Below are positions 3-61,694 of a DNA stretch of 64,000 nt, in pieces. The position numbers and the translations under genes were made by a program. The notes beneath the pieces are model-generated. The model was not told the DNA's origin and did not search any database. It was given only the letters and a program-made list of their open reading frames with translations. The stretch is from the sequence record AP017925.1. One strand, given 5' to 3'. Each line of letters begins with the position of its first letter. Position 1 is the first letter of the stretch.

Positions 3-38
3 GAGAGAGGAGGCGAATGCCTCCTCTCTCTATGCCGC
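3..38. terminator. Hairpin with TATGCCGC flank
   Basis: GAGAGAGGAGGC-gaat-GCCTCCTCTCTC-TATGCCGC; Nudix stop codon lies in the flank. Confidence 0.7.
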
Positions 39-452
39 TATGGTAATGCGGCTGGGTACAAAACCCTTTTCCACCAGAGATTTCAACGGCGGAAAGAGAT
101 TCTCAGGCAACTTATCCCATTCGAACCAACGCCATTCCTCACACTTGTTGGGTTCGCACACCACTGGGTCACCTTTCAGGAAATAGGTCTCCACAAAGTG
201 CGTTCTCCAGAGTGTATTGGTTTCCTCGAAGAAATCCTCGGTAACTATTTGGACTTCTCGCACAATACCAGCTTCCATACTGGTTTCTTCCGTGAGTTCG
301 CGAGCGCCACACATCACGGTCGTTTCACCAGCTTCTGGTTTACCGCCAGGAAGTCCCCACGTACCTGCTCCGTGGGAACCCAGTCGTTTACCCAGCAAAA
401 CGCGATTGTTGCGCGTTACGAGTACGGCCACGCCATCTTTTACAGTAGTCAT
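30..452 (-). CDS. Nudix (MutT-like) hydrolase
   Basis: Nudix box GGKPEAGETTVMCGARELTEETSM, preceded by VAVLVTRNNRVLLGKR..GTWGLPGG. Confidence 0.93.
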   Translation of the reverse strand: MTTVKDGVAVLVTRNNRVLLGKRLGSHGAGTWGLPGGKPEAGETTVMCGARELTEETSMEAGIVREVQIVTEDFFEETNTLWRTHFVETYFLKGDPVVCEPNKCEEWRWFEWDKLPENLFPPLKSLVEKGFVPSRITIAA

Positions 453-500
453 GTTCTTCCTTCAGCACAAAGACGGGATTTCTCCCGCCTCTATGCCGCT

Positions 501-2687
501 TTAGTGGTAATCGCTCGCCAGTTCCGTGATCTTGTCATCCAGGCAGTAGTAGCCCAGCGTTTCGAGGATCAGGTAGAACACCGCGGTACAGTCAAGCACG
601 GTACGACGCAAGTCCATCGCCAGAACGATTTCAGATGGCACACCGTGAACAGCAAGACGCTGCTGCGGAAGCAGGAACGTCGAGATGGCCTTCTTGCCGG
701 ATTCTGCGAAGAATCCTTCCAGCTCGGTACGGATATGCTTGTCTTCGATCTTTTCCAGCCACGACCTGATCGCTCTCTGGTTCGGCAGATACACCGGCAC
801 CTTGAACACGGCATACGGAGGTTCGTCCATATGGCCGTACTTGTCGGCGAAGATGCGTTCCCAGAGCTTGTAATGCACGTACGGCGACTGATCTTCTTCC
901 TTGGTATAAGAACCCTTGGATTTGATCTGCTGCGAACGGAAGTACGTGGAATCACCAGCAATTGCAGCTGCGATGATATCACGTTCGATCTGAGCGACTT
1001 GTTCGAGTTTCTCGGCAATGGAGATTTGCTCACCACGAGCAGCGGCGTCCATGATGTCTTTCATCATCTGTTCCGCTTTCTTCATCACCAAGCCCGGCAC
1101 GTTGGAAGACTTCAGGTGAACACCCTTGATCTCCATATCGTACTCGATGAACAAGTTACCTTCCTGGCAGCCAATGTACGCATAGTAGTGCTTGCCTACC
1201 TGTGTCGGAACGAATACGTCAAACTTGAACTCGTTCTTCATGGCTACTTGGTGGATACGCTCAGTCTCGATACCGAAGTTTGCCGACATACGCGCTAGGA
1301 TGTGGGTAATCGCTTCTGCAGCCAAGAAAATCATCGTGGCAGCAACGCGGTTAGTCTCATCATCCACGAGCATCTTGCCGGTCTTCCATTCCACCCAGTC
1401 TTGCACGGTGAAAATGGTCGAGTCAGTATCAGACGTCAACGCAGCTCGGCGAATCGAGGTCGGGAAGAACGCTAGCGAAGCCGGAACGTTAGCTGTGACA
1501 AAGAAACACTCGATAAAGCTGCGATGCTCCAAGATCACCTTGTCGATGTTCTGACAAGTCGCGCCCAGATGGCTGAGCTTGATCCGGTCCGCTTCCTTGC
1601 GCTCCAGTTCTTTCTCAGGATCTTCCGCCTTCTCATCCAGTTTCGGATTCAGCTTCTTCCAGTCCACGCCCGCCATATGTTCCGGCAGCAGCTGAGTAGC
1701 TAGCGGTACGTATTCTTCACGCAGGCTCTTGATAACCTTGAGCGGATCTTCGAAGTCACCATAGCTCGGAGACGACAGACCTTCGATGAAGTTTCGCACC
1801 ACACTGTCGTTATACATGGCGATATGGAACAAGTCACCAATGTACACGAAAGCAGCCCGCTCGATCGGGGTCAGCTTTTCCAGCAGTTCACGAATGATCG
1901 CTTCCTGCTTCTTGCTCTTCCAATAGAAGCGAGTCGAAAACAACACACACTCCATCGCCTGTTCCGGCGTCGGGTAGTGCATCGAATACTCGGCCATCAC
2001 GGCTTCAAGCTTCTTCAGGTCAGTGCGGTTCGCGATCGAGATGATGTTGTTGATCACGATCGTCGGATGGTGATAGTGTCGGTTACCTGACAGCATCTTC
2101 TCGTTGTTCGCGTTACCGTAACCAGAAGTCGACCGGCAGTTCGACGTCAGCGTCGAGTGCGAAGTCTTGTTGTGCAGTGGGGTCGAGGTAGAGACGTGAC
2201 CGCCGGAGATAGCGTTGTTCGCGATCTTGGCATTCGACTGCTCGGAGTTCTTGAACAGTTCGAGGTCGATGTTACCTGCCATCTTTGCTGCAAACATGGC
2301 CTTCTTCGCTTTACCGCGAATAGCCACGTTCTCATCCACGAATTCCACGAGGATCGATTGCTTTTCCTTCGGGTTCGTGTACGTCGTAAGAGTTGGAGCA
2401 ATCAGCTCTTGGTTGCGAATGGAATCGGTCAGATACCCGAGGAGCGTGCCTTCTTTCTCGACACGGTCTTCGTAGTTCTCCCGCTCCAGATATTTGATCT
2501 TCGGGTCCTTGAATTCGAACACACCACCAGGCTTCAGGTTATCCTTCACGAAAGCGGTGCACTTTTCGATTGGATCACCAGTCATGGTGGACAGAAACTT
2601 GGCGACATCTTGCACGTAGTGCTGCAAAAAGTTAATGTCTCTTTGGTAGTCCGGCTTGTCAAGAACGAATGGATTGGCGACTGTCAT
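501..2687 (-). CDS. Family B DNA polymerase catalytic subunit, phiKZ gp50-like (split polymerase)
   Basis: 728 aa; SDTDSTIF catalytic motif, KIANNAISG region B, K-Y-YA and KGVHLKSS motifs; N-terminus NPF..DKPDYQRDIN typical of phiKZ-like polymerases. Confidence 0.9.
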   Translation of the reverse strand: MTVANPFVLDKPDYQRDINFLQHYVQDVAKFLSTMTGDPIEKCTAFVKDNLKPGGVFEFKDPKIKYLERENYEDRVEKEGTLLGYLTDSIRNQELIAPTLTTYTNPKEKQSILVEFVDENVAIRGKAKKAMFAAKMAGNIDLELFKNSEQSNAKIANNAISGGHVSTSTPLHNKTSHSTLTSNCRSTSGYGNANNEKMLSGNRHYHHPTIVINNIISIANRTDLKKLEAVMAEYSMHYPTPEQAMECVLFSTRFYWKSKKQEAIIRELLEKLTPIERAAFVYIGDLFHIAMYNDSVVRNFIEGLSSPSYGDFEDPLKVIKSLREEYVPLATQLLPEHMAGVDWKKLNPKLDEKAEDPEKELERKEADRIKLSHLGATCQNIDKVILEHRSFIECFFVTANVPASLAFFPTSIRRAALTSDTDSTIFTVQDWVEWKTGKMLVDDETNRVAATMIFLAAEAITHILARMSANFGIETERIHQVAMKNEFKFDVFVPTQVGKHYYAYIGCQEGNLFIEYDMEIKGVHLKSSNVPGLVMKKAEQMMKDIMDAAARGEQISIAEKLEQVAQIERDIIAAAIAGDSTYFRSQQIKSKGSYTKEEDQSPYVHYKLWERIFADKYGHMDEPPYAVFKVPVYLPNQRAIRSWLEKIEDKHIRTELEGFFAESGKKAISTFLLPQQRLAVHGVPSEIVLAMDLRRTVLDCTAVFYLILETLGYYCLDDKITELASDYH

Positions 2688-2788
2688 TTGTTCTCAGGCG
2701 ATGTTTGTGGAGTCAAATAGATGCGATGGGAAAATAAAAAAGGGATTGGAGGGTGGTAGGCGGCCGTAGCCGCCCACCGCGAGGAAGG

Positions 2789-3235
2789 TTATCCTTTCGG
2801 AAAGAACACACGCCATTGGTCTTTGAGGTAGACCAGCAAAGCGCGGAACTTTGCTTGGAAACGACCGTGACGGAAACGCTTACGGATATAACGCGGCTGT
2901 TCTCGCAGATTACCGTTAGCAATAAGGCTATCGATCACGTCAAGATCTGTTTTCGGGTCAGGCGATCCTCCACTATTGAACTTGACGCGCAAGCCGTAGA
3001 GAAGATCGTCACCGGCGCACGTGTAACGCACTTGAATCTCGGGTTCGCCTCGTCCAGTGTCGCATTCGATCACTGCGATATGCAGGAAGTCATTCCCTAC
3101 CGGCAAAATATAGAAGCGATCACTGATCACGTCGTAATCACCGAATTCCTTACGCAGATGGTGCAGAACGATGAAGTGAACGATGAGATAGAACCCTTTG
3201 TCCCTGAGGGTCTGACAGACTTCTTTGAAAGTCAT
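2789..3235 (-). CDS. Hypothetical protein
   Basis: 148 aa; NNC/CTG codon usage matches the genome; AGGA just upstream of ATG; preferred over the overlapping + frame. Confidence 0.7.
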   Translation of the reverse strand: MTFKEVCQTLRDKGFYLIVHFIVLHHLRKEFGDYDVISDRFYILPVGNDFLHIAVIECDTGRGEPEIQVRYTCAGDDLLYGLRVKFNSGGSPDPKTDLDVIDSLIANGNLREQPRYIRKRFRHGRFQAKFRALLVYLKDQWRVFFPKG

Positions 3236-3259
3236 GGCTTTGTCCTAAAAAATGAATAG

Positions 3260-3640
3260 CGGCATAAGACCGGGAGAGACCGGGTCACTCTCCCAGTCTC
3301 TCCACGGCCCCAGAGGCGCTCCACAACAACAGTAACAACCGCCTAGACAAATCTGGCATGGAGAGTGCGAGTCTCCACGGATCTATCTAACCACCACGGG
3401 TGTCCTCCCACGTTCTTCGCGCTCGTGAGAATCGATAGATTATCAGACAGTTGTCAGTCGCAGGCTTCACCACAAAGCCAAACGCTACGCCTTAAAGGAA
3501 AGAAACGACGTAACGCTAAACAGGTTCGACCAAGACCTGCTTTTCTGCATACCATGTACCACAAAATAAAAAATTACTAAATGTCACAATGACAACATAA
3601 AACCTACTAGATAGCAGACCTTACAGATCTGTTTCTCTAG
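3260..3640 (-). ncRNA. Candidate early non-coding RNA
   Basis: About 370 nt between a CATATTAC motif and a terminator, with no SD-led ORF and several stems. Confidence 0.3.
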
Positions 3641-3643
3641 TAG

Positions 3644-3651
3644 GTAATATG
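3644..3651 (-). promoter_or_regulatory. Early-type promoter motif CATATTAC
   Basis: One base from the phiKZ early consensus TATATTAC; TTTCA-N4 upstream. Confidence 0.6.
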
Positions 3652-3672
3652 GGCTTGAAACTTCTTTGAGAC

Positions 3673-5490
3673 TTACAGCGAGGCAATCGACTGATCGACG
3701 TACTTCATGATCGAGACGAATACTCGCCACTCACGCTGACAGATGGTGTCGTACAGCGAACCGCTGGTCGATTCATGCGCGTAAATCGCATTGATCGCCA
3801 TATGCTGTTCGTCATTCATCATGTCCCACAAATGGCGTACCGGACGATCGAATTCGAAGAAAGAGTCCTCATCGAGTGTTTGGTCATCCAGCGAACCTTT
3901 CAGCGACGGGTAGCCGCTTTCCATGGTGATGAATTCAAATGCAGCGGTGAGGATTTCCCGCAGCTGCTCGACACTCTGGGCCTTCGGCATAGCAACCGGC
4001 ACCGGATTGCTGTAGTCGATGTCGTAATAGACAATGCCGGTTTTACCATATGTCAGCTGCTTCATCTGTCCAGGATTGCCGCCGATCCAGCCATCATACT
4101 TGCTGGATTCTTCATGGAACGTATTCCATGCATTGGCAGCACGCGCACGTTGCGCGTTAGCCACCAGCGGCTTCATCGCTTCATCCAGCACTTCCTGCGG
4201 CAGATCACCTTGACGATCCATCGCAGCGACTACAGTCTTCTCGAAACGTTCGATCAGCGGCTTAACGATGCGAGCAAACTGTACTGCACTCTTGATCATG
4301 CGATCATTTACCGTCGTAGCTTCTTTCCACGTCTTGGAAAGTGCGCGAGCGATTTCATTCGGATTAGGGCTGTGTCCGTTGATCGAAAGGATCAAGCCGG
4401 CGTCAGTACCGAAGCTCTTGCCTGTCAGCTGGAAGGATTCCGGGGATTTCAAGAAGCTATTGCAGTGTGCTAGGGCGCGCTGCATGTCGAACTTGTACAG
4501 CGACTCATCGCTGCTTTGCCGGGGCTTCTTACCCTTGAAGATGTCGAAGAAACCTTCCGTGGCCGGTTGACGTGTCACCAGTCTCTTGTCGAACATGGCG
4601 ATGTACAAACCGCAAATGGTCGGCCCGATCGAATACGAAAGTCCTTGGGCGAGATCAGAAACCTCGTAACCACCTTGACCAGTAAACAGATTGTTGAAGA
4701 TTTCGTCACCGTACTTCAGCTCGTCATACTCGATGCCATCTGCAACCGCATCCCAATAAGCGATGTAGTTATCGGACGCGATCTTATCGGCTTCGGCAAT
4801 AATCGACATCAAATCACGAATGGCGTCTGCGAATTCCTTAGCATTGTGCTCGTCGGGCGCGATGATTTCACCGTCCGTTTCCACGCGAGGGAAAACGGTG
4901 AATTCTTCATGATTCAGGTTCTTGAAGTTGAACGGCCAAGTGTACTGGTTATCGTAACCCAGTGCCGGCAATGGCTTCTTACACTGCTGCTGAGTACGGC
5001 CAACGGCCGAACCAGCCAGCTGTTTGGCATGAGCTTCCCAGAACTTGTCGAGGGCAGCGTTGTCCTTGATCTCCTGGGCTTGTTTTGTCAGCTTACGACG
5101 CAGCTCGGTAAAGGGCTTCTCACGCGAAACGATAGCCTTAACGGCATCGAGCATGCCGCGAGCAGCATAAGCTATATCTCGCGGGCGAGTGAGTGCCTTG
5201 CCATTCACGTTGGCGTACTTGAGTACAGCCACCTTAATGGTGCCGGAACCATCGACGAGATTCTTCTTCACCCAGTCCGGATTATCGTAGGTACGACGCA
5301 GATCGTTCTCAAGGTCTTTCGACAAGAGTGAGGAGTTGTGGTATTTGCTGTTGTTCAGCATTTCCACACGCTCTTCCTCTGGCGTTTTCTTAACGAAGAT
5401 CTTCTTGATCGCGTCGATGAAACCTTCACAGGCCGGGCCGTACGAGCCAGCATCAATGTCGAATTGGCTAGGAATGCTCAGGATTTTCAT
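3673..5490 (-). CDS. Putative internal head (ejection) protein with two A-x-E/GF cleavage motifs
   Basis: Start at 5490 directly follows the upstream stop; PACE-GFIDAIK near the N-terminus and PATE-GFFDIFK mid-protein resemble S/A/G-x-E prohead protease sites. Confidence 0.65.
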   Translation of the reverse strand: MKILSIPSQFDIDAGSYGPACEGFIDAIKKIFVKKTPEEERVEMLNNSKYHNSSLLSKDLENDLRRTYDNPDWVKKNLVDGSGTIKVAVLKYANVNGKALTRPRDIAYAARGMLDAVKAIVSREKPFTELRRKLTKQAQEIKDNAALDKFWEAHAKQLAGSAVGRTQQQCKKPLPALGYDNQYTWPFNFKNLNHEEFTVFPRVETDGEIIAPDEHNAKEFADAIRDLMSIIAEADKIASDNYIAYWDAVADGIEYDELKYGDEIFNNLFTGQGGYEVSDLAQGLSYSIGPTICGLYIAMFDKRLVTRQPATEGFFDIFKGKKPRQSSDESLYKFDMQRALAHCNSFLKSPESFQLTGKSFGTDAGLILSINGHSPNPNEIARALSKTWKEATTVNDRMIKSAVQFARIVKPLIERFEKTVVAAMDRQGDLPQEVLDEAMKPLVANAQRARAANAWNTFHEESSKYDGWIGGNPGQMKQLTYGKTGIVYYDIDYSNPVPVAMPKAQSVEQLREILTAAFEFITMESGYPSLKGSLDDQTLDEDSFFEFDRPVRHLWDMMNDEQHMAINAIYAHESTSGSLYDTICQREWRVFVSIMKYVDQSIASL

Positions 5491-5491
5491 A

Positions 5492-5899
5492 TCAGTTGTT
5501 TCCAGCGATGGAAAGGGAGATCTTGTCATAACCGTTCTGACTCAGACAAGCGCGGATGCGTTCGAGGTCACCGCTACCGACGCCATCAATGACGACGTTG
5601 ATCTGGAGCGATTCAACCAACTCGATGGTTTCCTCGATGATCCAAGGAATACCGATAACGGTGGAATCCCCACCATCAGTGCGCAACAGCAGATAGTCGA
5701 AGTCCTGCGGACGATTCGGTGTGCCGGCTGGCAGACTAGGGAAAACGTTGATGTGGAGTGCAGCCAGATCCGCCAGACCGAGCGCAGTCTGGTAGTCGAG
5801 AATGGCTTGCACGGTAACATTCTTGAAGCCCGTGCCAAGGATGGCGCTCGGGTACACGTCGAAGGAGTAAACCTTACGAGTTTGGAAAGGGTAGGCCAT
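5492..5899 (-). CDS. Conserved phiKZ-like small protein, probable virion component
   Basis: 135 aa; VYSFDVYPSAILG..FKNV pattern recalled from phiKZ-like phages; abuts the head protein gene. Confidence 0.6.
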   Translation of the reverse strand: MAYPFQTRKVYSFDVYPSAILGTGFKNVTVQAILDYQTALGLADLAALHINVFPSLPAGTPNRPQDFDYLLLRTDGGDSTVIGIPWIIEETIELVESLQINVVIDGVGSGDLERIRACLSQNGYDKISLSIAGNN

Positions 5900-5969
5900 G
5901 GCGATTTGGAGTCCGTAATAAGAGACATAAAATTGCCACGAACTCCGCTACACGGCAAAAAAAAAAAGA

Positions 5970-6007
5970 CGGCATAAAACGAGAGGGATGCTGATGCATC
6001 CCTCTCG
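5970..6007 (-). terminator. Intrinsic terminator with TTTTATGCCG tail
   Basis: 12-bp stem immediately after the 6009 stop. Confidence 0.8.
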
Positions 6008-6008
6008 C

Positions 6009-6389
6009 TCACACGAACAGAACCGAATCATTTTTAATCAACATCTTTTTATACCCTTGCGCGTAGAAGTAATCGTAGATGTTGTAATCGATCAGTAGGA
6101 GGTTGAAATCCTGACAGAGATCGTTGAACACCTTGGCTACGTATGCGCGTGATACGGGGTCGTTGAGGTGCAGCTCGTCGAGAAGCTCTGCACTGGGAAA
6201 CACGTGGGACTCGTTGTCGAAGTACGCACATTGTCTCCAGTTCTCGAACATCTCTTCGAGCATTCGGTTAAAGTACAAGACACTGATCGGTTTGGGTAAA
6301 ATAATGCGCTCTATGGCCCGCTTGCACTTCAGGATAGGTGTACGCAGGCTGAGCGATAACGGCTGGTCGGATGGGTGGGAGATTTGCAT
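6009..6389 (-). CDS. Hypothetical protein (start 6389 or 6263)
   Basis: ORF ends directly at the 5970-6007 terminator; start uncertain because of overlap with the upstream gene. Confidence 0.6.
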   Translation of the reverse strand: MQISHPSDQPLSLSLRTPILKCKRAIERIILPKPISVLYFNRMLEEMFENWRQCAYFDNESHVFPSAELLDELHLNDPVSRAYVAKVFNDLCQDFNLLLIDYNIYDYFYAQGYKKMLIKNDSVLFV

Positions 6390-6882
6390 CTATAATGATC
6401 TTTGACAAAAACAAGTATCGACCACTAACTAATCGGTAGAACTCGTAGGGGAAAAGGTCAGCATTAAATTTCGCGACCATGTCAAATCTCGCCAAGAGAA
6501 AGTCACAAATGCACTTGATACCAGCTACCAGCGCATTCACTTCCGTCGAACCGGAATCAACCAGAACCTGGTCGAGCAGCTCCATGCGGAACGCTTCCAA
6601 GTTCAGCCCATAATTGCTACGCTTACTGATCAGTTCCAAAGCTTTCTGCACACACAATTCATGCGGAGCGGCAAACTCCTGCAAGTTGTTGGTATACATG
6701 GACAGATTGTTCAAGGGTTCTGCCAAATCCAAACTTACGACATTTGGCAACATCGGATCAGTAGAGAAGCCGCCTACGAGTTCATCGCTCGCGCTATACA
6801 TGGATTGCATGTCAAATGCCTCTTCTCTGTATTCATAGACACCGCAGAGAAATAACTCTGCCGTCAAAGGAGTGGTATTCAT
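6268..6882 (-). CDS. Hypothetical protein with FPYEF motif
   Basis: ORF in a same-strand cluster; shares a C-terminal motif with its neighbour. Confidence 0.65.
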   Translation of the reverse strand: MNTTPLTAELFLCGVYEYREEAFDMQSMYSASDELVGGFSTDPMLPNVVSLDLAEPLNNLSMYTNNLQEFAAPHELCVQKALELISKRSNYGLNLEAFRMELLDQVLVDSGSTEVNALVAGIKCICDFLLARFDMVAKFNADLFPYEFYRLVSGRYLFLSKIIIDANLPPIRPAVIAQPAYTYPEVQAGHRAHYFTQTDQCLVL

Positions 6883-7228
6883 AGGGAAACTTCCCATTCA
6901 CGTCATATCGACCTTGGGTGACCAAAGTCGTGTGTAGGTAATGCGCAACTCTGTCACTTGCCACAGCGACGTGATCCATAAACCGTGATTGGTACTTCTG
7001 GAAAAGTTCCGGATCGCCGTGAGAGATGCAATAGTCGAAGTACCCGTTGGTGTTCAGCAGGTCACCGATCATGTCGGTCAAGTCCTCTGAGAACTTGTCT
7101 TCGTACTGCAGAGTTGCAATTAGATCGCTCATGAAGAAACCCTCACGAGCCCCTACAGAATCTAAGATCTTAAGCAGCTTTTTCAATTCGGGAGCTGCTG
7201 GCCCGGCGTGGATAATGGCCAGACTCAT
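6833..7228 (-). CDS. Hypothetical protein with FPYEY motif
   Basis: 131 aa; GAGG upstream; same-strand cluster. Confidence 0.7.
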   Translation of the reverse strand: MSLAIIHAGPAAPELKKLLKILDSVGAREGFFMSDLIATLQYEDKFSEDLTDMIGDLLNTNGYFDYCISHGDPELFQKYQSRFMDHVAVASDRVAHYLHTTLVTQGRYDVNGKFPYEYHSFDGRVISLRCL

Positions 7229-7234
7229 TGCTGC

Positions 7235-7669
7235 TCACCTCAACAGAAAAGTACCGGAGTCAAACTGGTAGTTGGAGGAAAGGCGCTTCACTTGGGAAAA
7301 AGGGTAGTCCGCAAAATCCTGATTCTCCTTTTTCGGCACTAAGTGGATCAATGATGTCTTAGCGTATCGGTAAATGTCAAAGGTTCGCCGGAAGAACTCA
7401 CGACGATCTATCTGGTATTTCTCCAAATCGATGGTGTTTTCATCGAACAGGATCTGATAGTAGGAGTCGAAGATCTCCACACACTGATCGAAGTAATCCA
7501 CCAGATCGTGATCGAGAACGTGTTGGAGAGCGAGTTCGAAGATCTGGCTCGATCCGCCACTCAGCTCGTTGAACTTGCTGAAATACGCTCTCTGGTCAGG
7601 CAGCTCGTAACGACCGCTGCTGCCAATCTGATTCGGATAACCTACGACGATGGCGTTGTTAGCGGTCAT
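7235..7669 (-). CDS. Hypothetical protein
   Basis: GAGGA SD before ATG 7669; the ORF-track start at 7699 is the ATG inside the TATGCCG element. Confidence 0.7.
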   Translation of the reverse strand: MTANNAIVVGYPNQIGSSGRYELPDQRAYFSKFNELSGGSSQIFELALQHVLDHDLVDYFDQCVEIFDSYYQILFDENTIDLEKYQIDRREFFRRTFDIYRYAKTSLIHLVPKKENQDFADYPFSQVKRLSSNYQFDSGTFLLR

Positions 7670-7692
7670 TGGGAATTCCTCTGCATGTTTTA

Positions 7693-7756
7693 GCGGCATA
7701 AAAGCACCGTCAGGGTAAGAAAGCCCCCAACGGTGTCTAGAATGCCTTTTATGCCG
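7693..7756. terminator. Symmetric CGGCATAAAAG-hairpin-CTTTTATGCCG element
   Basis: 11-bp outer inverted repeat enclosing an inner stem. Confidence 0.7.
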
Positions 7757-8272
7757 TTATTGCTGTTGCACTGCTGCCTTGAGCCACGACGGCAGGAAGT
7801 CGTGGCAAGCGGTGATTACAGCTCGACCATCCAATGGTGCAAGCACCACCGGAGAGACCAGACCTTGAAGCACCGGAGTGTAGACCACCAGTTCGCGCGT
7901 TGCCGGGAAGAACTTGTAGAGACACTCGCTCGGCTTGTGGGTGTAATCCGGTGTCACCTGCAGCAGTGTGGTTGTGATGGTGTCATTCATCGCCCAGAAG
8001 ATCTCGCCCATGAGGTCAGCGCAGTCTGCCATCGTCTTGGCATCGAACGGCGCTTCATTAACCCCATACGGGAAGACAATGGTGCGATCTTCCATCGTGA
8101 AGTGCGGCTGATTGGTGGTGAGCGCTTCCCCGTAAAAGTAGTCGCCCAACATCACGCGCAGTGTTTCACCCACGTCTACAACAGCGGGCCCGCCGATGAA
8201 CTCCTGAAACATGGCGTCCATTTCGGAAAGACGAAGGCGTTTTTCGTGGTATTGCGGAACTGCGGTCGTCAT
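7757..8272 (-). CDS. Hypothetical protein
   Basis: 171 aa; start overlaps the upstream stop (ATGA coupling). Confidence 0.7.
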   Translation of the reverse strand: MTTAVPQYHEKRLRLSEMDAMFQEFIGGPAVVDVGETLRVMLGDYFYGEALTTNQPHFTMEDRTIVFPYGVNEAPFDAKTMADCADLMGEIFWAMNDTITTTLLQVTPDYTHKPSECLYKFFPATRELVVYTPVLQGLVSPVVLAPLDGRAVITACHDFLPSWLKAAVQQQ

Positions 8273-9216
8273 TGATTAATTTCCCAATGCAAAATTCGGT
8301 AATCGCCGAGACTACTCACCGATACCTGGTTGTCATTCAGAACGGTAGCACAAAACACGTCGTAACCATGTTGTGGCTGTACGGAACGCTCTGCCAACGG
8401 CCGTATGGCAGGAAACTGAGCATTGACAATGCGCGCCAGTTTTACCGTCAGCTCGTTCAAGACGTACTGGATCTGATGGCGATCCCAGAAGTCCTGTGTG
8501 ATGACGTTCTCGTAATGCGAGCCACTGACATCGTAGAGCTTGAGCGCATCTTCACGAGTCATGCCTTCGCGGAACACCTGATGACGGAATGACGATTGCT
8601 CCGAACCAATCTCGGTCTGCAGATGCAACAGCTCTTCCGCTAGCTCTGGCACTTTGACAGCAACCAGCTTTTCAAGGCTAAGATGGAACTGCAAGAAATG
8701 CTGTGTCGGCTTGGGGTGAAGCTTCGACCACAGCTGATCCTCATTGAGGTAGACATTCAAGAAGTCTGCCACCAACTGGAAGAACTGCGGGTTAGGCATG
8801 TAAAAGTAGTCGAAACTACCAGCAGCCCAAGCATGATTCAGATGTGCCGCCGTGTAGTGCAGCGCAGGGCGTTCCATGCAATGGACTTCACCAGGCGTAG
8901 TCAGTTCGACGAATGGGTTGAAGGGCTGAATGGCTCCTTCAACATTAGCGTAGTAGGTCCAGTCCTCACGGAAGACGATCTTCTGATCCATCGTAGCCAT
9001 TACCTCCAGCTGCGGCTTGAAGTCCAGTACGTCTTCAAGCATGTCGCTGATTGCGGTAGCGATGTTCCTCAACGTTGTCACGGCCATGACATTGTTGAAT
9101 TTATCCAGTTTTTCGTCTCGGGCCAATAATGACACAATGTCGACGTAACTCAACATTGGATTCAAAAGCGAGGTCCCCGGACCCGATGTAAGGGAAGAGT
9201 TTGTTTGATCCGACAT
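8269..9216 (-). CDS. Hypothetical protein (start uncertain, 9216/9156/9087)
   Basis: Long ORF with genome-like codon usage; 5' end overlaps the upstream gene. Confidence 0.65.
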   Translation of the reverse strand: MSDQTNSSLTSGPGTSLLNPMLSYVDIVSLLARDEKLDKFNNVMAVTTLRNIATAISDMLEDVLDFKPQLEVMATMDQKIVFREDWTYYANVEGAIQPFNPFVELTTPGEVHCMERPALHYTAAHLNHAWAAGSFDYFYMPNPQFFQLVADFLNVYLNEDQLWSKLHPKPTQHFLQFHLSLEKLVAVKVPELAEELLHLQTEIGSEQSSFRHQVFREGMTREDALKLYDVSGSHYENVITQDFWDRHQIQYVLNELTVKLARIVNAQFPAIRPLAERSVQPQHGYDVFCATVLNDNQVSVSSLGDYRILHWEINQ

Positions 9217-9472
9217 CTTCTTGTATGGTGAATGTGTCATCGCCATCGCTCCGACGGTAATTCGAGCGTACGATCGCTGCGATAGACTCCATTCCCACCT
9301 CATACTCGGGGGTTAGGTCGACCAGCAGCACATCTTCGACCGCTCGGGCTATGATGTATTTGTTCCAAACTTCTAAGGGGATAGTCTCAGTATCCACACC
9401 GAGCTTTATCAGTTCTCGATGGATCTGCTGAAAAATCTCCTTAGCAGTGAAGACAATCGTGTGTTCAGACAT
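9101..9472 (-). CDS. Hypothetical protein
   Basis: 123 aa; first gene after the PhuZ terminator; GGAG upstream. Confidence 0.6.
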   Translation of the reverse strand: MSEHTIVFTAKEIFQQIHRELIKLGVDTETIPLEVWNKYIIARAVEDVLLVDLTPEYEVGMESIAAIVRSNYRRSDGDDTFTIQEDVGSNKLFPYIGSGDLAFESNVELRRHCVIIGPRRKTG

Positions 9473-9531
9473 GGGATGCTCCCTCGTCTAAGGTACAAAG
9501 AATTGCTGCTAGCAATAAAAAAGAACGCGAA

Positions 9532-9586
9532 GGCATACAACCCCTACCCGGACCCAATCAAGGGCCTGGGTAGGGGTTTAAAGCCG
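9532..9586 (-). terminator. phuZ terminator
   Basis: ACCCCTACCC/GGGTAGGGGT stem, then TTGTATGCC on the minus strand. Confidence 0.7.
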
Positions 9587-9597
9587 TCTAAACGCTA

Positions 9598-10602
9598 TTA
9601 CAGCGCCAAGAAGCCACCGGCCAGTTCTTCCTTACCGGAGAGAACTTCGCTCTGGGTGGTGCGAGCCGCCGCCGCGCGTTCCATTTCGTCGAGATGACCG
9701 CGCAGGCGGGCAGCGATGCCGTTGAACGGGTAGGCCTTGGTGACCAGGTGAACCGGAGCTTGCTGGGAGATTTCGGCCGAGATTTCGGCCGGCAGTACGC
9801 CGTAGCAGGTGTAGGGGATCACGAAGTCGACGCCACTGTTGTCCTTGTCAGCGCGAGCCGAAGCCAGCGTGATGGTATCAGCATGATCGGTGGCGGTCAG
9901 CTTGCCGGCGTAGGTTTCCAGGCCGACTGCATGCGCCTTGTAGCTGGTCATGCGGTTGACGTTCAGGAAGTTGTACATGTCGCGGGTATCCAGGCCTTCG
10001 TTCTGGCGCGAGAACAGCACCGACACAGCGACGACCAGTTCGGTGATCTTGTCATCGACCTTGGACATCGGCGTTTCCTGGTTGTTCTCGAAGTACGCGA
10101 CGGCGATCGTCTTGTCGGTCGTCTGCACGATGCCTTCGAAGGTCTTCAGGGTGTCCAGGGTGTTCTTGATCTCGGCGCCAGAATCAGCCACGCCCACGGT
10201 GATAGCGATCACCAGTTGGTCGTTGTCGAGCAGTTCCTTGATCAGGGCAGCGGCCAGCACGCCGCCGGTGCCGCCCGAGGCGGACGACAGCACCACGTTC
10301 GCGTAGCCCGGACGATGCTTTTGCAGCATTTCCTTGGCACCCTTCATGATCGCGGCAGCGTTCTGACGGCGTTCCTTGCCCGAGCCGTCCACGTCCGGAA
10401 CCAGGTAGATCTTGTCGGCCGGCATGCTCGGCTTCAGGTTCGAGCGCGAGGTGTCGAAATAGACGACATCGACCTCCGCCATACCAGCTTCGATGTGGCC
10501 GCGGAAGCCTTCGAAGTTCGAGCCGATGTTGATACCAGCGCCACCGCAGGCGTACAGTTTGATGTTGCCGCGTTCGGCCACTTGTGCTTGGTTTTGTTCC
10601 AT
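9598..10602 (-). CDS. phuZ: Phage tubulin PhuZ
   Basis: T1 loop ACGGAGINIG; T4-like SASGGTGG; C-terminal tail ending ELAGGFLAL; AAGGA SD; strongly biased codons. Confidence 0.93.
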   Translation of the reverse strand: MEQNQAQVAERGNIKLYACGGAGINIGSNFEGFRGHIEAGMAEVDVVYFDTSRSNLKPSMPADKIYLVPDVDGSGKERRQNAAAIMKGAKEMLQKHRPGYANVVLSSASGGTGGVLAAALIKELLDNDQLVIAITVGVADSGAEIKNTLDTLKTFEGIVQTTDKTIAVAYFENNQETPMSKVDDKITELVVAVSVLFSRQNEGLDTRDMYNFLNVNRMTSYKAHAVGLETYAGKLTATDHADTITLASARADKDNSGVDFVIPYTCYGVLPAEISAEISQQAPVHLVTKAYPFNGIAARLRGHLDEMERAAAARTTQSEVLSGKEELAGGFLAL

Positions 10603-10690
10603 GATGCTTTCTTTCCTTTAAAGGGTTTGGTGAGGGAGAAACGGGAATGGCAGTAATTGCTTCCACACAAGAACTGCCGAACGGTAAAAC

Positions 10691-11170
10691 TTAAGCCTTG
10701 AAGGCAGTTCCGCCATACATCTGATCCATCGGATTCATCGCGTTCATGTCAGACGGAGGCGCGATGGTCTTGGCCGCGGGAACAAAGTCGGCATCTTCGA
10801 GGACGATGACGCCATCTTCACCGACAATCGGGGTATCGGTGGTCTTGACGCTGATGTCGGCAGCCATCAGGTGGTCTGCACCAACTGGTGCTTCTTCAGC
10901 GGCCAGTTTCTCACCGCGTGCACCAGCTTCCAAGAGCTTAGCTTGCGCGGCGCGTTGCTCTTTCATTTGCTGATTGCGCTTGTTCACTAGGTGGAAGTGG
11001 TTGTTGCGACGCTCTTGTTCGCGACGCACCTTTTCTTGGTTCTTCTTCAGACGACGCTGCACACCCTTGTTCATGAACTTGGCGTGGGTCACACCGGCGG
11101 CGAGAGCTTCATCGATCTGGCCTTTGGTGATCTTGGAGGTAGCGATGTTGACCTGACGAGTGTTGGACAC
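10691..11170 (-). CDS. Hypothetical protein (basic coiled N-half, acidic C-half) upstream of phuZ
   Basis: GTG start with AAAGGA SD; downstream of a CATATTAC motif. Confidence 0.75.
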   Translation of the reverse strand: MSNTRQVNIATSKITKGQIDEALAAGVTHAKFMNKGVQRRLKKNQEKVRREQERRNNHFHLVNKRNQQMKEQRAAQAKLLEAGARGEKLAAEEAPVGADHLMAADISVKTTDTPIVGEDGVIVLEDADFVPAAKTIAPPSDMNAMNPMDQMYGGTAFKA

Positions 11171-11263
11171 GACTATTCCTTTACTAAGTAACGTGGTGAG
11201 GAAACTAACAACCTACTTAAGATTGCGGCTATTCTGTAGAAAACCGCCATTGTTCACAGAGTA

Positions 11264-11271
11264 GTAATATG
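11264..11271 (-). promoter_or_regulatory. Early-type promoter motif CATATTAC upstream of the phuZ operon
   Basis: CACATATTACTAC, intergenic, about 95 nt from the GTG start. Confidence 0.65.
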
Positions 11272-11555
11272 TGAGCGACGACAACTTCATTTGAAGCTAT
11301 GGTTCTCAGGAGCGCCAGCGGGACGCCGCCTGGTAGGTTACCAAAGACTGATGCAACACTGCACCGATTGTTTGGTTTATGACAACTCACAACACCCTCT
11401 TCGCCTATGGCATGTTCGTTAGTGAGTGAACCGGTTATTTGAAAATGCGATCGCCGCCCGTGCCATATGCCGGAGCGGGATCAAAGATCTCCTTTTCCTT
11501 TTTGACCTGTTTGCTCACATGCGCCTGAGCACTACATCACGAAAAGAGATTTATC

Positions 11556-12359
11556 ATGAATGCCCTTCGTAAAGCGCTGGACGATATCAAATTCGTTATT
11601 CCTCGCGCTGTGCTGGAAACCGTATTCGTTAAACGCCACCAAAACTTTCGGGTGGCGTCCCCGAGTCTGGACGAGCAGATTCTGAATGAGGTGATTAGAC
11701 CTCGTGTTTATATCGACACCAATCTCGTAGGTGGTGCCGAGATCCTGGTTGACCTGAGCGGTCTCGAAGGCGATGAAGTGAACACCACTGACATGGTGTA
11801 TCGCATCCCGAAGAACCGGACGCAAAACCGCACGATCATGAGCGTGCTCAACGTGACCTACGTTGATGCGCAAGCGATGGCCGCGGCTGGTCAATACGCT
11901 TCCTGTGGTGTGTCGGCTGAACAATCAGCCGCGCAAGCACTGCTGGATGCCGTATCGCCCCTGCCGCTGATCTCCACGGGTCGCATCACCGTCATCGGTG
12001 AAAACGTCGTGTTGATCCGTGACTCGATTCGCATTCCATCCAACAGCTACCTGCGTTGCATTGTGGCGCACGATGAGGCGATGAGCCACATCCAGCCGCG
12101 TAGCTACAAGGCGTTCTGCAAGCTGGTGGAGTACGCGGTCAAGTCCTACATCTACAACGAGTACGTGGTAGAACTGGACATGGGCGAGCTGCGTGGCGGT
12201 CATAACCTCGGTAAGTTCAAGGACATCATCGAGGGCTACAACGACTCCGAGGAACTGTACGACACGTACCTCCGCGAGAAGTGGGCCAAGATTTCCTTCC
12301 AGAACGACAGAGAGAGCCACAACCGCTTCTTGAAGCTGTTGATCGGTGGTCCGCGCTAA
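11556..12359 (+). CDS. Conserved phiKZ-like virion structural protein
   Basis: 267 aa; AL..IK..IP..VL and RPRVYIDTNLVGG patterns recalled from phiKZ-like core genes; TATGCCG upstream. Confidence 0.65.
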   Translation: MNALRKALDDIKFVIPRAVLETVFVKRHQNFRVASPSLDEQILNEVIRPRVYIDTNLVGGAEILVDLSGLEGDEVNTTDMVYRIPKNRTQNRTIMSVLNVTYVDAQAMAAAGQYASCGVSAEQSAAQALLDAVSPLPLISTGRITVIGENVVLIRDSIRIPSNSYLRCIVAHDEAMSHIQPRSYKAFCKLVEYAVKSYIYNEYVVELDMGELRGGHNLGKFKDIIEGYNDSEELYDTYLREKWAKISFQNDRESHNRFLKLLIGGPR

Positions 12360-12371
12360 AAAATAAAAGCG

Positions 12372-12419
12372 CAACATAGAGGAGAGGAGGGCAGACGCCC
12401 TCCTCTCCTTTTATGCCGC
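12372..12419. terminator. Bidirectional terminator between convergent genes
   Basis: 12-bp stem plus TTTTATGCCGC. Confidence 0.8.
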
Positions 12420-12974
12420 CACAGCCTGTTCGACTTTTTCTTCGAACGAAAGGGCAATGAAACCATTGTCCATTACGATAACAACGGATACTTGTCGTTC
12501 GTCATCGTAGTATTCGTCCAGATGCTGTTCATTGATGAACGCCTGCACCTTACCACCCGAAGGACCACCGGCAATCCGCGAATCCGGGAAGGCCATGAAT
12601 GTGGCCATTTCCGTGACGTGGAAACAGAAGCGCGTCAACAGCCCGAGTAGGTCCTTCGTTCCTTGACAGTAAAGGACGTTCTCACTTTGCGTACGGAACT
12701 GGCTGTAGCGCAGATCCTCGATTTGTTCCGTACGGAATTCTGTCTTGGGTTCGGCAAAGCTCACCACCATAGCCGCGCCCTTCTCACTTTCGAAATGACG
12801 GAAACCGACGACACCTTCAGCAGTATCTTCAGCTGTCTTCTCAGTTGCAGCAATTCGCGTGAAGGGATAAAGCTTCTTCAGCAAATCTTCGGTGAGCAGC
12901 AGGGCTTCGCCATCCATTTGTGCCCGCAGAGGAGCGAGAGATTCGATGAGCTTTTGATGAACAGGACTGACCAT
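12411..12974 (-). CDS. Hypothetical protein
   Basis: GGAG SD before ATG 12974; stop codon lies within a GCGGCATAA element. Confidence 0.7.
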   Translation of the reverse strand: MVSPVHQKLIESLAPLRAQMDGEALLLTEDLLKKLYPFTRIAATEKTAEDTAEGVVGFRHFESEKGAAMVVSFAEPKTEFRTEQIEDLRYSQFRTQSENVLYCQGTKDLLGLLTRFCFHVTEMATFMAFPDSRIAGGPSGGKVQAFINEQHLDEYYDDERQVSVVIVMDNGFIALSFEEKVEQAVAA

Positions 12975-12976
12975 GT

Positions 12977-13543
12977 CTATTTTTCTCCGTTGTCGATTAC
13001 GAAATAGCAGGTGACGGTGCAATATGGATTTCCTTCAGGACCGAACTCATGCACCACACCGATGCGATAGGAAGTAGAGCCTTCGCACGTACAAGAGCTA
13101 TAGTGGTAGTTGATCTTGTCTGCCTTGATCCCACTCAGGGTGTCAAGCAACTGATGGAAGGTGATTTCACCATCTGCATCGAAATGCGCTTCACGGACAA
13201 GAGCTGGAATCTGCTTGAGGACTTCCTCTTTCTCGACGCAACGATGGGCGTGGAGGAATCGCAGGCACTCACGCTCATCATCCGGTTTCTTCGAGTACGC
13301 TACCAGTCGAGCAGAGCAGTACGTCACTTTCTTGGAAGAACTGCCTTTGAGATGGATGCGCTTTTCCTGATATTTCAGGAACGGCAGTGCAAACAAGCCA
13401 TGCGACACTGCAATGGCATCTTCAAGGGAAGAGGTCTGTTCGTACTTCTTGAACAGGTCGTTTAGCACGACAGCGATGGATGTCAACCCAATGTTCGCCA
13501 CCTCAGGGAATGCTGGGTCGATTTTAATGTTCATGGTCATCAT
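12977..13543 (-). CDS. Hypothetical protein
   Basis: ORF abutting the next gene; start 13543/13540/13534. Confidence 0.65.
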   Translation of the reverse strand: MMTMNIKIDPAFPEVANIGLTSIAVVLNDLFKKYEQTSSLEDAIAVSHGLFALPFLKYQEKRIHLKGSSSKKVTYCSARLVAYSKKPDDERECLRFLHAHRCVEKEEVLKQIPALVREAHFDADGEITFHQLLDTLSGIKADKINYHYSSCTCEGSTSYRIGVVHEFGPEGNPYCTVTCYFVIDNGEK

Positions 13544-13611
13544 GCCGAGCCAAAATAAAAGAAGGATCAACACGAGCCAGAGAGCGAATGCTCTCTGGCT
13601 CTATGTCGGGG

Positions 13612-14172: not shown

Positions 14173-14237
14173 GACTGATTAAACTTTCATTTAGAGTTAG
14201 AGTTTGTCTTGAGCTACCGCTAGTATAGCTCAGGTCT

Positions 14238-14245
14238 GTCATATG
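14238..14245 (-). promoter_or_regulatory. Early-type promoter variant CATATGAC
   Basis: TTTCA-ACCA-CATATGAC, same spacing as the other copies. Confidence 0.45.
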
Positions 14246-14484
14246 TGGTTGAAAATAAATTCATTCCATCATGACGATTTGTTGCTGCTCTACTACTCAT
14301 TCAGTCTATGGGACGACAAAATAAAAAAGAAGTTTCCCCTACCCCCAGCGCCTCGTAGGCGCCAGGAGTGGAGACGTACTGTGGCTTATAAAAGCCCGAG
14401 TTGATAGAAAAGGGCATAACCCCCGACACCGGCGCCTTTCCAAGCGCTAGTGCCGGAGGTCATTTCGTGTGCTACAGGAGGAGA

Positions 14485-15006: not shown

Positions 15007-15195
15007 GGTTTCCTCACTTGTGTCGATAAGTCTAGTGAACAATGCCCCGTAAATCAGGACTAGCTCCGCGAACACGCGGTCGCATTTGCTCTGACAAATT
15101 TTCACTGCTAAAGAATCCGAATTTCCCGTACTTTATGCCAATGAACACTGTGCCCTCAGGCACGAGTGGGTTTGCTAGCCAAAGATGACTCAACC

Positions 15196-15449: not shown

Positions 15450-15555
15450 CGTAGATTGCTCCTTTAGGAATCTACTGCTCTGTGTATTTTTGTTTCTCCG
15501 TCTAGAAGCTTATCACATGGCGTATAGTCCTTATTTAAATAAGTTGGAAATTTTT

Positions 15556-15684: not shown

Positions 15685-15734
15685 ACTTCGCATCGAATAG
15701 GGTCACGTAGTAAAAAACGACTATTCGTCGTAAC

Positions 15735-16352: not shown

Positions 16353-16384
16353 GATGTACTCTTAAAAAGAAGTTGGTTTGAATT

Positions 16385-16933
16385 GCTTGCAAGCAAAACC
16401 TCTTGCAAGCATGACATAGTCATAAGCCCTCATAACGCTTACCAAGGGCTTCTGCCTCATAGTAGAGGTCACAGCGGCATAGAGAGTAGAGGGACAACCC
16501 TCTACTCTCCTAAAAAGAATTTTTTGTCTATGGAGTGCTCTTACAGGCACTCCTAGCACCCATGATCAATTATTTACCTATTCTTATTGATCTTGTGTAC
16601 GCTTAGAAACCGGTCATAAAGCTAGTAGGGCCTTCGGCCCCTACTAGCTCCTTAAGCGAGGCTATGTCGTTCATCTGAAGATGAAGGAAAACCTTAATTC
16701 CTCATCACTCACGGTCAGACGCACGTTGGCGTCTGTCCGGGGATAGTTAGTCATCTACCACACTAAGTTATTTCACTCACCCAGCTTGGCTGCTCCTTCT
16801 ACCTCCCCAATCAGTGCGTTCACTCCTGACCACACTGATCAAACTATAAGGGGAGAGAATGTAAAAAGATGATTAACCTTAGGAAGTGAGAACACTTCCT
16901 TATGAGACGAGATACCGTCCTTATAAAGGACGA
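16385..16933. repeat. Tandem array of about 12 unrelated inverted repeats
   Basis: Successive stems read directly from the sequence in a divergent intergenic region. Confidence 0.75.
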
Positions 16934-16967
16934 TGTTCCAGTATAACCAACTTGTGGTGAGATCAAC

Positions 16968-18979: not shown

Positions 18980-19026
18980 CCAGCATAAAAGGCCAGGAGG
19001 GGAAACCCTCCTGGCTCTTATGCTGG
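18980..19026. terminator. Bidirectional terminator between the 17714 gene and terL
   Basis: CCAGCATAAAA-stem(GAAA)-CTTATGCTGG. Confidence 0.8.
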
Positions 19027-21348: not shown

Positions 21349-21391
21349 CAGCATAAAAAGCGAGAGGGTTTCCCCTCTCGCTCTTATGTCG
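21349..21391. terminator. Hairpin element between gp26-like and terL
   Basis: CAGCATAAAA-stem-CTTATGTCG. Confidence 0.7.
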
Positions 21392-30311: not shown

Positions 30312-30331
30312 TTCGCACACGCGAAACATGG

Positions 30332-30432
30332 AAAGCTGGGGCCTTTGGGCTCCAGCTTTTTTATGCCGCAACAAAAAAAAATAAGGGCATAAAGAGCAGA
30401 GCGAGCCATGTGGCTCGCTCTGCTCTATGACG
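30332..30432. terminator. Two back-to-back terminators (tube gene and DUF1281 gene)
   Basis: Stem plus TTTTTTATGCCGC on +; GGGCATAAAG-stem-CTATGACG for -. Confidence 0.8.
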
Positions 30433-31470: not shown

Positions 31471-31705
31471 TTTCTTTTACCAAAAAAATAAATCGGCATA
31501 AGAAGCGAGGACTCTTTCGAGTCCTCGCTCTTAGGAATTGTGACGTGGGAACCGAAGTTCCCACGAGTCCTTGACCTGATGTGGTTTCTGATGAGGGGAG
31601 TTGTTTATGGGCGAACCCAAGCAGGTCCCTTTTCCTGCACCACGTGCGGTCTTCGCAGTCTTTCGACCACAGGCAGGACCACTTGCCTTCTTCCAGCAGG
31701 AAGCC

Positions 31706-33486: not shown

Positions 33487-33543
33487 GCGGCATAAAAGGC
33501 CCACCAGAGGCCCATAGAAGGCCTCCAGTGGGTTTTTACTGCC
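33487..33543 (-). terminator. Protease gene terminator
   Basis: Bulged stem followed by TTTTATGCCGC on the minus strand. Confidence 0.7.
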
Positions 33544-36750: not shown

Positions 36751-36810
36751 GAGACTGTTGGTCCGCTGATGTTGGTAAGAAAAATCCGCGTGTGGCGTGA
36801 CACATGAAAG

Positions 36811-36847
36811 AGGCTACGTGGCGTGAACCACGTAGCCTTTTATGCCA
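36811..36847. terminator. Hairpin after the vRNAP beta gene
   Basis: AGGCTACGTGG/CCACGTAGCCT stem plus TTTATGCCAC on +. Confidence 0.7.
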
Positions 36848-50928: not shown

Positions 50929-50970
50929 CGGCATAAGAGACGACGGGGGTAACCTCGTCGTCTCTCTATG
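50929..50970. terminator. Hairpin element after the tape measure gene
   Basis: CGGCATAAGAGACGAC..GTCGTCTCTCTATG. Confidence 0.7.
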
Positions 50971-50998
50971 TTTTGAGTCTTTTTAACAGATCACGGCT

Positions 50999-53506: not shown

Positions 53507-53557
53507 GCGGCATAAAAGAGAAGGGGCCTCGCGGTCCCTTCTCTTTCTTTTATGCTG
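53507..53557. terminator. Bidirectional terminator after the RyR gene
   Basis: GCGGCATAAAAG-stem-CTTTTATGCTG. Confidence 0.8.
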
Positions 53558-54787: not shown

Positions 54788-54871
54788 GATCGTCCTTAAA
54801 CAAAAAAGAAATAGGGGCATAACCACAGCCCGCCTCCCGAAGGAAGCGAGCTGTGGCGTGGGCGGATGGGC

Positions 54872-57430: not shown

Positions 57431-57438
57431 GTAATATG
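57431..57438 (-). promoter_or_regulatory. Early-type promoter motif CATATTAC
   Basis: CACATATTACTAC, identical 13-mer to the 11264 copy. Confidence 0.65.
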
Positions 57439-59556: not shown

Positions 59557-59557
59557 C

Positions 59558-60754: not shown

Positions 60755-60803
60755 CGACATAAGAGAGAGTAGAGGCCCAAAGGCCTCTACTCTCGCTATG
60801 CCG
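60755..60803. terminator. Symmetric hairpin element after phoH
   Basis: CGACATAAG-stem-CTATGCCG. Confidence 0.75.
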
Positions 60804-60811
60804 TAACTTGA

Positions 60812-61585
60812 TTAAGCAGCTTTCGCGTACTTGCGACGATAGGCCTTGACGACCTCGCGCACCAGCGGATCACGGGTGATTTCGCTTTCGTCGAACTCGT
60901 GGAATGACGCAACATGCGAGTTTCGGAAAAGCTCTACTGCCTCATCGAGCCCGTTCTCCTTGTGTTTGGGCAGGTCAGATTGATCCGCGTCACCGTTAAT
61001 GATCAGACGACTGCCCTGACCAGCCCGAGTCAGGAACATCTTCATCTGACCAGGCGTGGTGTTCTGCGCTTCATCCAAGATGACGATAGCGTTGCGGAAA
61101 GTCGAGCCACGCATTCTCATCAGCGGCTTGGCAACGATCAAACCACGCTCACGGTACGATTTGACCTTTTGCTTGCCAAGTTTGCCCTCCAGTACCTCGA
61201 TGAACGGAGAGATCCAAGCTTCAAACTTCTCCTCCTCGGTGCCGGGCAAGAACCCCATATCTTCATCACAGCCAACCATCGGTCGGGTGATAATGATGCG
61301 TTCGATTTCTCCCTTGAGCAACTGCTCAGCTGCGTAACTGGTCGGCACAAAGGTTTTGCCAGTGCCGGCAGGGCCAATCAAGAACAGCAGACGAATGGCT
61401 TCATTGTCCAGATTGTCAATGATGCGCTGCTGTTTGGGATTTCGTGCAGTTAGCGGACCAAAAATCGGTTTGTTCGAACGATATTCTTCTCGCGCCTCAG
61501 CATCCAGCTGTGCGTCGTGCAGAAATCGTTGATCAGCGGCTTGGCGAGCACGCTTGGATTTGGTCTTAACGTTGGTATCACGCAT
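60812..61585 (-). CDS. phoH: PhoH-like ATPase
   Basis: GPAGTGKT, IIITRP, LGFLPG-like MGFLPG, MRGSTF, ILDEAQN and GDADQSD motifs. Confidence 0.95.
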   Translation of the reverse strand: MRDTNVKTKSKRARQAADQRFLHDAQLDAEAREEYRSNKPIFGPLTARNPKQQRIIDNLDNEAIRLLFLIGPAGTGKTFVPTSYAAEQLLKGEIERIIITRPMVGCDEDMGFLPGTEEEKFEAWISPFIEVLEGKLGKQKVKSYRERGLIVAKPLMRMRGSTFRNAIVILDEAQNTTPGQMKMFLTRAGQGSRLIINGDADQSDLPKHKENGLDEAVELFRNSHVASFHEFDESEITRDPLVREVVKAYRRKYAKAA

Positions 61586-61662
61586 GAGAGAACCCGCTTC
61601 TTAGAAGTTAGAAGAAAGTGGCTACTGCCGAGTTGGAATTATTCCTTACTCACAAGATGATT

Positions 61663-61694
61663 GCGGCATAAAAGCGAGGGGTTTCCCCCTCGCT
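61663..61694 (-). terminator. Terminator with TTTTATGCCGC tail upstream of phoH
   Basis: AGCGAGGGG/CCCCTCGCT stem with a GAAA loop on the minus strand. Confidence 0.75.

Follow-up and report, generated by a model that had tools for sequence, protein, structure and literature searches.

Hairpins followed by a TATG box in Ralstonia phage RP31 are probable phiKZ-type intrinsic transcription terminators

The intergenic regions of Ralstonia phage RP31 contain many GC-rich hairpins that are followed by a short box with the letters TATG, and the present analysis concerns this hairpin-plus-box element. The stretch of DNA analyzed (64,000 nucleotides (nt), called the window below) is identical (100%) to bases 1-64000 of AP017925.1, a record of 276,958 bp, so window coordinates are also record coordinates. 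RP31 is a phiKZ-related jumbo phage of the genus Ripduovirus, and its annotation includes several split genes for the beta and beta' subunits of RNA polymerase (RNAP). Genes were called with a codon model and checked against the annotation. The genomes compared were the entire RP31 genome, RP12 (97% identical), FLC4-3B (about 78% in conserved genes), RSL2 and phiKZ; the paper that describes RP12 and RP31 says nothing on promoters or terminators.

A first-pass annotation of the window had reported about 25 intergenic hairpins with a conserved TATGCCG flank, and 24 elements were counted here, in which the shared signal is a hairpin and then TTATGCCG. All the copies and variants it listed are real hairpin-plus-box elements except the one at 15556, which gives only a weak fold (-5.7 kcal/mol) and no convincing stem. 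Several elements are located where genes converge. The hairpin 3-30 with CTCTATGCCG (3..37, + strand; -25.3 kcal/mol, z -5.7) separates the last + strand gene, which ends at 276945 of the circular record, from ORF001 (-; ORF, open reading frame). Between ORF015 (+) and ORF016 (-) there is a bidirectional copy (12372..12418), in which the hairpin 12378-12411 is flanked by CAACATAG and TTTTATGCCG, and the junction of ORF042 (+) and ORF043 (-) has another (53508..53557) with TTTTATGCCG on the - strand and TTTTATGCTG on the + strand. The bidirectional element between ORF022 (+) and the terminase gene ORF023 (-) (18981..19025) contains TATGCTG on both strands and is wholly flipped in RP12. Two elements share the convergent junction of ORF028 (+) and ORF029 (-): the hairpin 30331-30360 with TTTTATGCCG (30331..30368, + strand), which follows ORF028 and faces ORF029, and the hairpin 30393-30426 (30385..30432), with CTTTATGCCC (-) and CTCTATGACG (+).

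Other elements carry the box on the - strand. They are the hairpin 3267-3310 with TCTTATGCCG upstream of ORF003 (3260..3310), 5977-6010 with TTTTATGCCG, which starts at the stop codon of ORF006 (5970..6010), 9539-9578 with TTGTATGCCT (9531..9578), 14419-14460 with GGTTATGCCC (14412..14460), 31503-31530 with TCTTATGCCG (31494..31530), 33500-33532 with TTTTATGCCG after ORF034 (33488..33532), 54822-54857 with GGTTATGCCC (54815..54857) and 61673-61694 with TTTTATGCCG after ORF054 (61664..61694). One more, the hairpin 3602-3645 with TTTTATGTTG (3593..3645, - strand), stands directly downstream of the early-promoter-like CATATTACC (3650). A stretch of 615 bp without a credible ORF (16353-16967), located between divergent genes, contains two - strand elements, the hairpin 16482-16509 with CTCTATGCCG (16475..16509) and the hairpin 16620-16649 with CTTTATGACC (16612..16649); this stretch is a candidate source of small non-coding RNAs, and neither it nor the rest of the window matched any family in an Rfam search.

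In the remaining elements the box is found on both flanks or on the antisense flank. The hairpin 7703-7738 (7694..7756) is enclosed by CGGCATAAAAG ... CTTTTATGCCG, with boxes at 7700-7694 (-) and 7750-7756 (+). The hairpin 21356-21385 (21349..21391) has TTTTATGCTG on the sense (-) flank and TCTTATGTCG on the + strand, and 60762-60797 (60755..60803) has TCTTATGTCG on the sense (-) flank and CGCTATGCCG on the + strand, while 50936-50965 between ORF040 and ORF041 (+) (50929..50973) has CTCTATGTTT on the sense flank and TCTTATGCCG on the antisense flank. Between the stop of ORF002 and the start of ORF001, the hairpin 471-491 (471..498, + strand) contains TATGCCG on its antisense (+) flank and a degenerate TTTGTGCTG on its sense (-) flank. 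Antisense flanks also bear the box at 13574..13608 (+; hairpin 13574-13601 with CTCTATGTCG), at a codirectional (-) junction, and at 36809..36847 (+; hairpin 36809-36840 with TTTTATGCCA), after the stop of ORF038.

The box is strongly enriched. The window holds 22 copies of TATGCCG where 5.62 +/- 2.34 would be expected, and none of 100 shuffles reached 22; 15 copies adjoin a GC-rich stem-loop, one is intergenic without a hairpin (11466) and six are intragenic, about the chance number. Genome-wide, 106 intergenic copies of TATGYYG were found in RP31 against 10.1 +/- 3.1 in dinucleotide shuffles, which bears out the enrichment expected by the first-pass annotation, and the box recurs beside hairpins in RP12, FLC4-3B, phiKZ and, more rarely, RSL2. 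The extension depends on the hairpin: YYG follows 84 of the 128 intergenic TATGs next to a hairpin, compared with 32 of the remaining 217 (Fisher p = 6e-22), and TATGYYG without a hairpin stays at chance level (12-19 copies, about 10 expected). Thus the CCG extension, which had been proposed to exceed background, does so next to hairpins only, and because the hairpin-less form is at chance level we assign the extension to the terminator and not to a promoter. The copy at 11466 indeed has no hairpin, as had been noted, and its candidacy as a standalone TATGCCG promoter was rejected on the same ground.

The logo from 109 RP31 hairpin flanks reads yTT-TATG-C/T-C/T-G-y-T, with C preferred at both pyrimidine positions, and in 62 of 102 cases the G of TATG is 6-7 nt past the last G:C pair (5-6 nt in phiKZ). 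Eight representative elements, among them those starting at 5970, 12372, 16475, 30331, 31494, 53508 and 61664, were folded and gave -19.8 to -33.7 kcal/mol with z from -4.2 to -7.9; AUGCCG is single-stranded in all eight folds, and in 12370-12422 UUAU pairs with the opposite flank. A two-sided build, xxGCATAAA-stem-loop-stem-TTTATGCxx, is common among the RP31 elements. We also considered that the box might be kept merely through pairing with the 5' flank as an extended stem, and rejected this explanation: in 26 codirectional elements the only box is the one on the sense side, and the 5' flank is not complementary to it. Among the 117 intergenic hairpins of RP31 (at least 8 bp), 92 stems share no 9-mer with another stem, in agreement with the earlier observation that stems vary and the flank is kept. 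Canonical terminators are not enriched: a scan of 1-20000 for a hairpin and a U-tract (at least 5 T in 8) gave 20 hits with 18.5 expected, and the sole element there to pass this test is 18992-19015.

For the location relative to genes, it turned out that the elements follow stop codons closely. At codirectional RP31 junctions the median distance is 14 nt from stop to hairpin (interquartile range (IQR) 7-30) and 79 nt from hairpin to the next start (IQR 34-141). The TATG box is present in 35 of 42 flanks at convergent junctions; codirectional junctions have it on 43 of their 90 sense flanks and 29 of their 90 antisense flanks, and divergent junctions on 2 of 12 flanks. Convergent junctions are the richest in boxes in the other phages too (FLC4-3B, 30 of 34; phiKZ, 38 of 42; RSL2, 23 of 32). 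Of the RP31 genes, 171 could be aligned at the C-terminus with a counterpart in FLC4-3B; 42 of them are followed by a hairpin and box in RP31, and at 26 of these 42 junctions FLC4-3B also has a hairpin and box with unrelated stem sequences. Hence the stem is conserved in its structure and the box in its sequence.

Terminators of this build have been mapped in related phages. In phiKZ, ONT-cappable-seq mapped 61 terminators with the motif BCCYCCCCHWWDGGGRRGGBYTTATKYYGT, a stem-loop and then a TTAT region (Putzeys et al. 2024, Microlife, PMC10914365). Motif A, the most frequent terminator motif of 201phi2-1, strongly resembles that of phiKZ, and eight 201phi2-1 terminators were active in a reporter assay in uninfected host cells (PMC11512511). 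The RP31 box fits the YTTATKYYG(T) part of the phiKZ motif. When flanks of GC-rich hairpins (at least 9 bp) were scored for TTAT[G/T], it was found in 86 of 327 flanks in RP31, 87 of 310 in RP12, 64 of 222 in FLC4-3B, 81 of 170 in phiKZ and 24 of 226 in RSL2. The end of the phiKZ major head gene, ACATA-GGCCCTCCC-ttcg-GGGAGGGC-TTTATGTTGT, has the same two-sided build as in RP31. We therefore consider that the RP31 elements are intrinsic transcription terminators of the phiKZ type, with a probability of roughly 0.8. The match to the mapped phiKZ motif and the position just after stop codons uphold the terminator function already proposed for these hairpins.

A possible mechanism is as follows. 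A GC-rich RNA hairpin and then, at a set distance, the box yTTATG(C/T)(C/T)G(y)T would replace the long U-tract, and the transcribing enzyme would read the box as sequence, not as pairing. The RNA:DNA hybrid at the short UUUAU would be weak, the G of TATG, 6-7 nt past the last G:C pair, would be near the usual point of hairpin-driven release, and the GC-rich YYG just downstream may impede forward translocation. Weak hybrid, pause and YYG barrier together would hold the polymerase until the hairpin acts. The two-sided copies would be bidirectional terminators, in which the upstream CATAAA could pair with UUUAUG and extend the stem. A further step is speculative, and we regard it as rather unlikely: the TATG of the box might be read by the non-template-strand pocket in the gp123 beta-lobe of the elongating non-virion RNA polymerase (nvRNAP), as at late promoters, so that an enzyme caught 6-7 nt past the hairpin, in the register of a promoter, would pause, be released and possibly restart. 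Such recapture during elongation is speculative because the transcribing complex is described as having an incomplete TATG pocket in gp123.

Several points weigh against the terminator interpretation. Termination in RP31 and RP12 is deduced from homology and position, and the pause mechanism is one that we infer. Half of the strong intergenic RP31 hairpins have no box on the sense side, and the box is therefore optional. At codirectional junctions about a third of the hairpins have a box on the antisense flank, and 12 have it there only; these boxes fit termination only if antisense transcription needs to be stopped at such places. They are the least well explained feature, for which bidirectional termination is the simplest account. 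A link between antisense-only boxes and early-promoter units was tried and rejected, with five suggestive cases and no significant association (p = 0.78 and 0.41). Moreover, box, stem and other intergenic DNA are each about 0.8% diverged between RP31 and RP12, and two genomes this alike give no power to show purifying selection on the box.

The first-pass annotation had further proposed that each element both terminates transcription and, aided by its hairpin, provides in TATG(CCG) a start site for the nvRNAP. The phiKZ late promoter is TATG with G at +1, read by the gp123 beta-lobe pocket of the nvRNAP (Yakunina 2015, PMC4666361; IUCrJ 2026, PMC12809450), and the RP31 box holds exactly these four letters and keeps the G more strictly than phiKZ does (80 of 86 flanks against 48 of 81). 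The RP31 homologue of gp123 (E = 4e-69, 27% overall identity) has 8 of the 14 TATG-pocket contacts identical (5) or conservative (3), 67 hairpin-linked TATGs between codirectional genes are aimed at the next start, and in phiKZ the promoter strength depends on the sequence downstream of TATG. However, conservation of the box peaks at convergent junctions, at which initiation could yield nothing but antisense RNA, and about half of the hairpin-linked TATGs (74 of 150) aim antisense into the 3' end of a gene; the distance of the remainder to the next start is broad (median about 80 nt, IQR 41-145), which gives no set leader length. The YYG, kept only beside hairpins, has no counterpart in the phiKZ late-promoter logo, which shows no conservation past TATG, and the model late promoter P119L lacks an upstream hairpin. 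In 33 of 81 phiKZ boxes T replaces the G that is essential for initiation, no more than four phiKZ antisense RNAs with a defined start were detected by ONT-cappable-seq, and many upstream regions of RP31 late genes, that of the major head operon included, lack any TATG. The nvRNAP also has no need for pre-opened DNA: contrary to what had been assumed, the phiKZ enzyme gives robust run-off transcription from linear duplexes made by polymerase chain reaction, P119L included, and mismatch bubbles were required for cryo-electron microscopy alone, to order the DNA. A cruciform would leave the flank paired or duplex and thus not exposed. In our view the dual role is improbable; initiation may occasionally occur at some boxes, but promoter use is not supported as the reason for box conservation.

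Two other explanations were considered. The single-stranded UUAUGYYG beside the stem could be an endonuclease cut site or a site for an RNA-binding protein, which would make the mapped 3' ends post-transcriptional. RNase E-type cuts usually lie in an AU-rich single strand beside a stable stem, and the box is AU-rich, adjoins a stable stem and is unpaired in the folds of one-sided elements. The register of 6-7 nt between box and stem suits termination equally well, though, and the 201phi2-1 terminators block reporter read-through in uninfected cells; RNA processing or protection appears very doubtful. At the DNA level, the palindrome CGGCATAAA...TTTATGCCG could be bound by a protein or form a cruciform for replication, recombination or packaging. 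Many copies are two-sided, and loop inversions between RP31 and RP12 indicate that the two arms do at times interact at the DNA level, but such inversion is expected of any inverted repeat. Most copies are one-sided, the spacing between boxes varies with stem length from about 20 to 45 bp, which is unsuited to a dimeric binder, and the box orientation tracks the 3' ends of genes; we consider a palindrome function extremely unlikely.

The hairpin loops themselves differ between the two phages. They show 6.8% differences between RP31 and RP12, eight-fold the 0.8% of other intergenic DNA (p = 9e-23), and six exact loop inversions were found, with loops such as 18992-19015, 107535, 140493, 249820, 266176 and 273413. 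At 18992-19015 the flanking bases are swapped too, so that the whole element is flipped in RP12. Such inversions are the mark that template switching between the arms, or their recombination, leaves behind. In RP12, a few kb of additional DNA separate the terminators at 30362 and 30391; this insert is placed exactly between the two hairpins and bears a further hairpin and TTTATGCCG at one edge. Terminators may mark the points at which cassettes are inserted. In general, intergenic DNA is more conserved between the two phages (0.8% diverged) than coding DNA (1.45%).

Promoter-like motifs were found as well. ATATTAC (consensus tCAAAAA-N10-ACATATTACC) has 20 copies on the - strand and none on the + strand of the RP31 genome; 18 of the 20 are intergenic, mostly 44-170 nt upstream of - strand gene starts, and the window copies are at 3644-3650, 11264-11270, 33443-33449 and 57431-57437 (- strand). 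The motif resembles TATATTAC, which we take to be the early promoter word of phiKZ and which is distributed 33 vs 9 by strand there. The virion RNA polymerase probably uses the - strand copies of ACATATTACC as early promoters. TATGs within GGTAATATGT sites on the + strand were rejected as late promoters, being the mere complement of this strand-specific motif. At 3593-3650 (- strand), CATATTACC is followed at once by the hairpin and TTTTATGTTG, an arrangement that would yield a very short transcript or an attenuator before ORF003. Sites of the form TTTTTAC(TAC)-N11-13-TATG occur at 111872, 160446, 165882, 120364 and 201813 of the genome and at 60727 of the window (- strand), and they resemble the middle-promoter element of phiKZ, AAanTTACc near -24 with TATG at the start site.

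With these elements read as terminators, about 100 terminator sites can be placed on each of the genomes of RP31, RP12 and FLC4-3B; such a map delimits transcription units and flags unannotated short RNAs. That the terminator box of Pseudomonas phages persists in a distant, GC-rich Ralstonia lineage, and in an even sharper form, argues that conserved phage transcription machinery reads it. A stop signal that holds the four start letters of the polymerase bears on how this enzyme gains specificity from a 4-bp promoter, and if the gp123 pocket did read the box, one recognition module would mark both starts and stops of transcription in phiKZ-like phages.

Compared with known systems, the RP31 elements share with canonical bacterial intrinsic terminators a hairpin and a U-containing 3' flank located after genes, and their two-sided copies resemble A-tract/U-tract bidirectional terminators, in which an A-rich upstream arm pairs with the 3' flank. 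Unlike canonical terminators, they have no more of the U-tract than UUU(A)U, and a sequence-specific box takes its place. Non-template-strand contacts that aid termination reportedly have a precedent in the NusG-dependent intrinsic terminators of Bacillus. These serve as an analogy only: in Bacillus subtilis (eLife 2021, PMC8060035) the reader is NusG and the motif is T-rich, unlike the RP31 box, and we know of no such factor for jumbo phages. The phiKZ late promoter has the same four letters as the RP31 box, with a partly conserved pocket in the RP31 gp123 homologue; the RP31 box differs in its conserved YYG, its tie to a hairpin, its place after stop codons and its frequent antisense orientation. 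The closest counterparts are the terminators of phiKZ and 201phi2-1, with a GC-rich stem-loop and YTTATKYYGT after genes and bidirectional copies at convergent genes, and RP31, like phiKZ, has its own virion and non-virion multisubunit RNA polymerases. The differences lie in detail. G follows TTAT in 93% of RP31 flanks and in 59% of phiKZ flanks, the box of RP31, RP12 and FLC4-3B prefers CC over TT and has the final G in 77% (40% in phiKZ), and the 5' arm of the stem is purine-rich in RP31 and CCYCCCC in phiKZ. In conclusion, this kind of terminator is already known from phiKZ and 201phi2-1, and what is new here is its probable presence in a Ralstonia lineage with a sharpened box.

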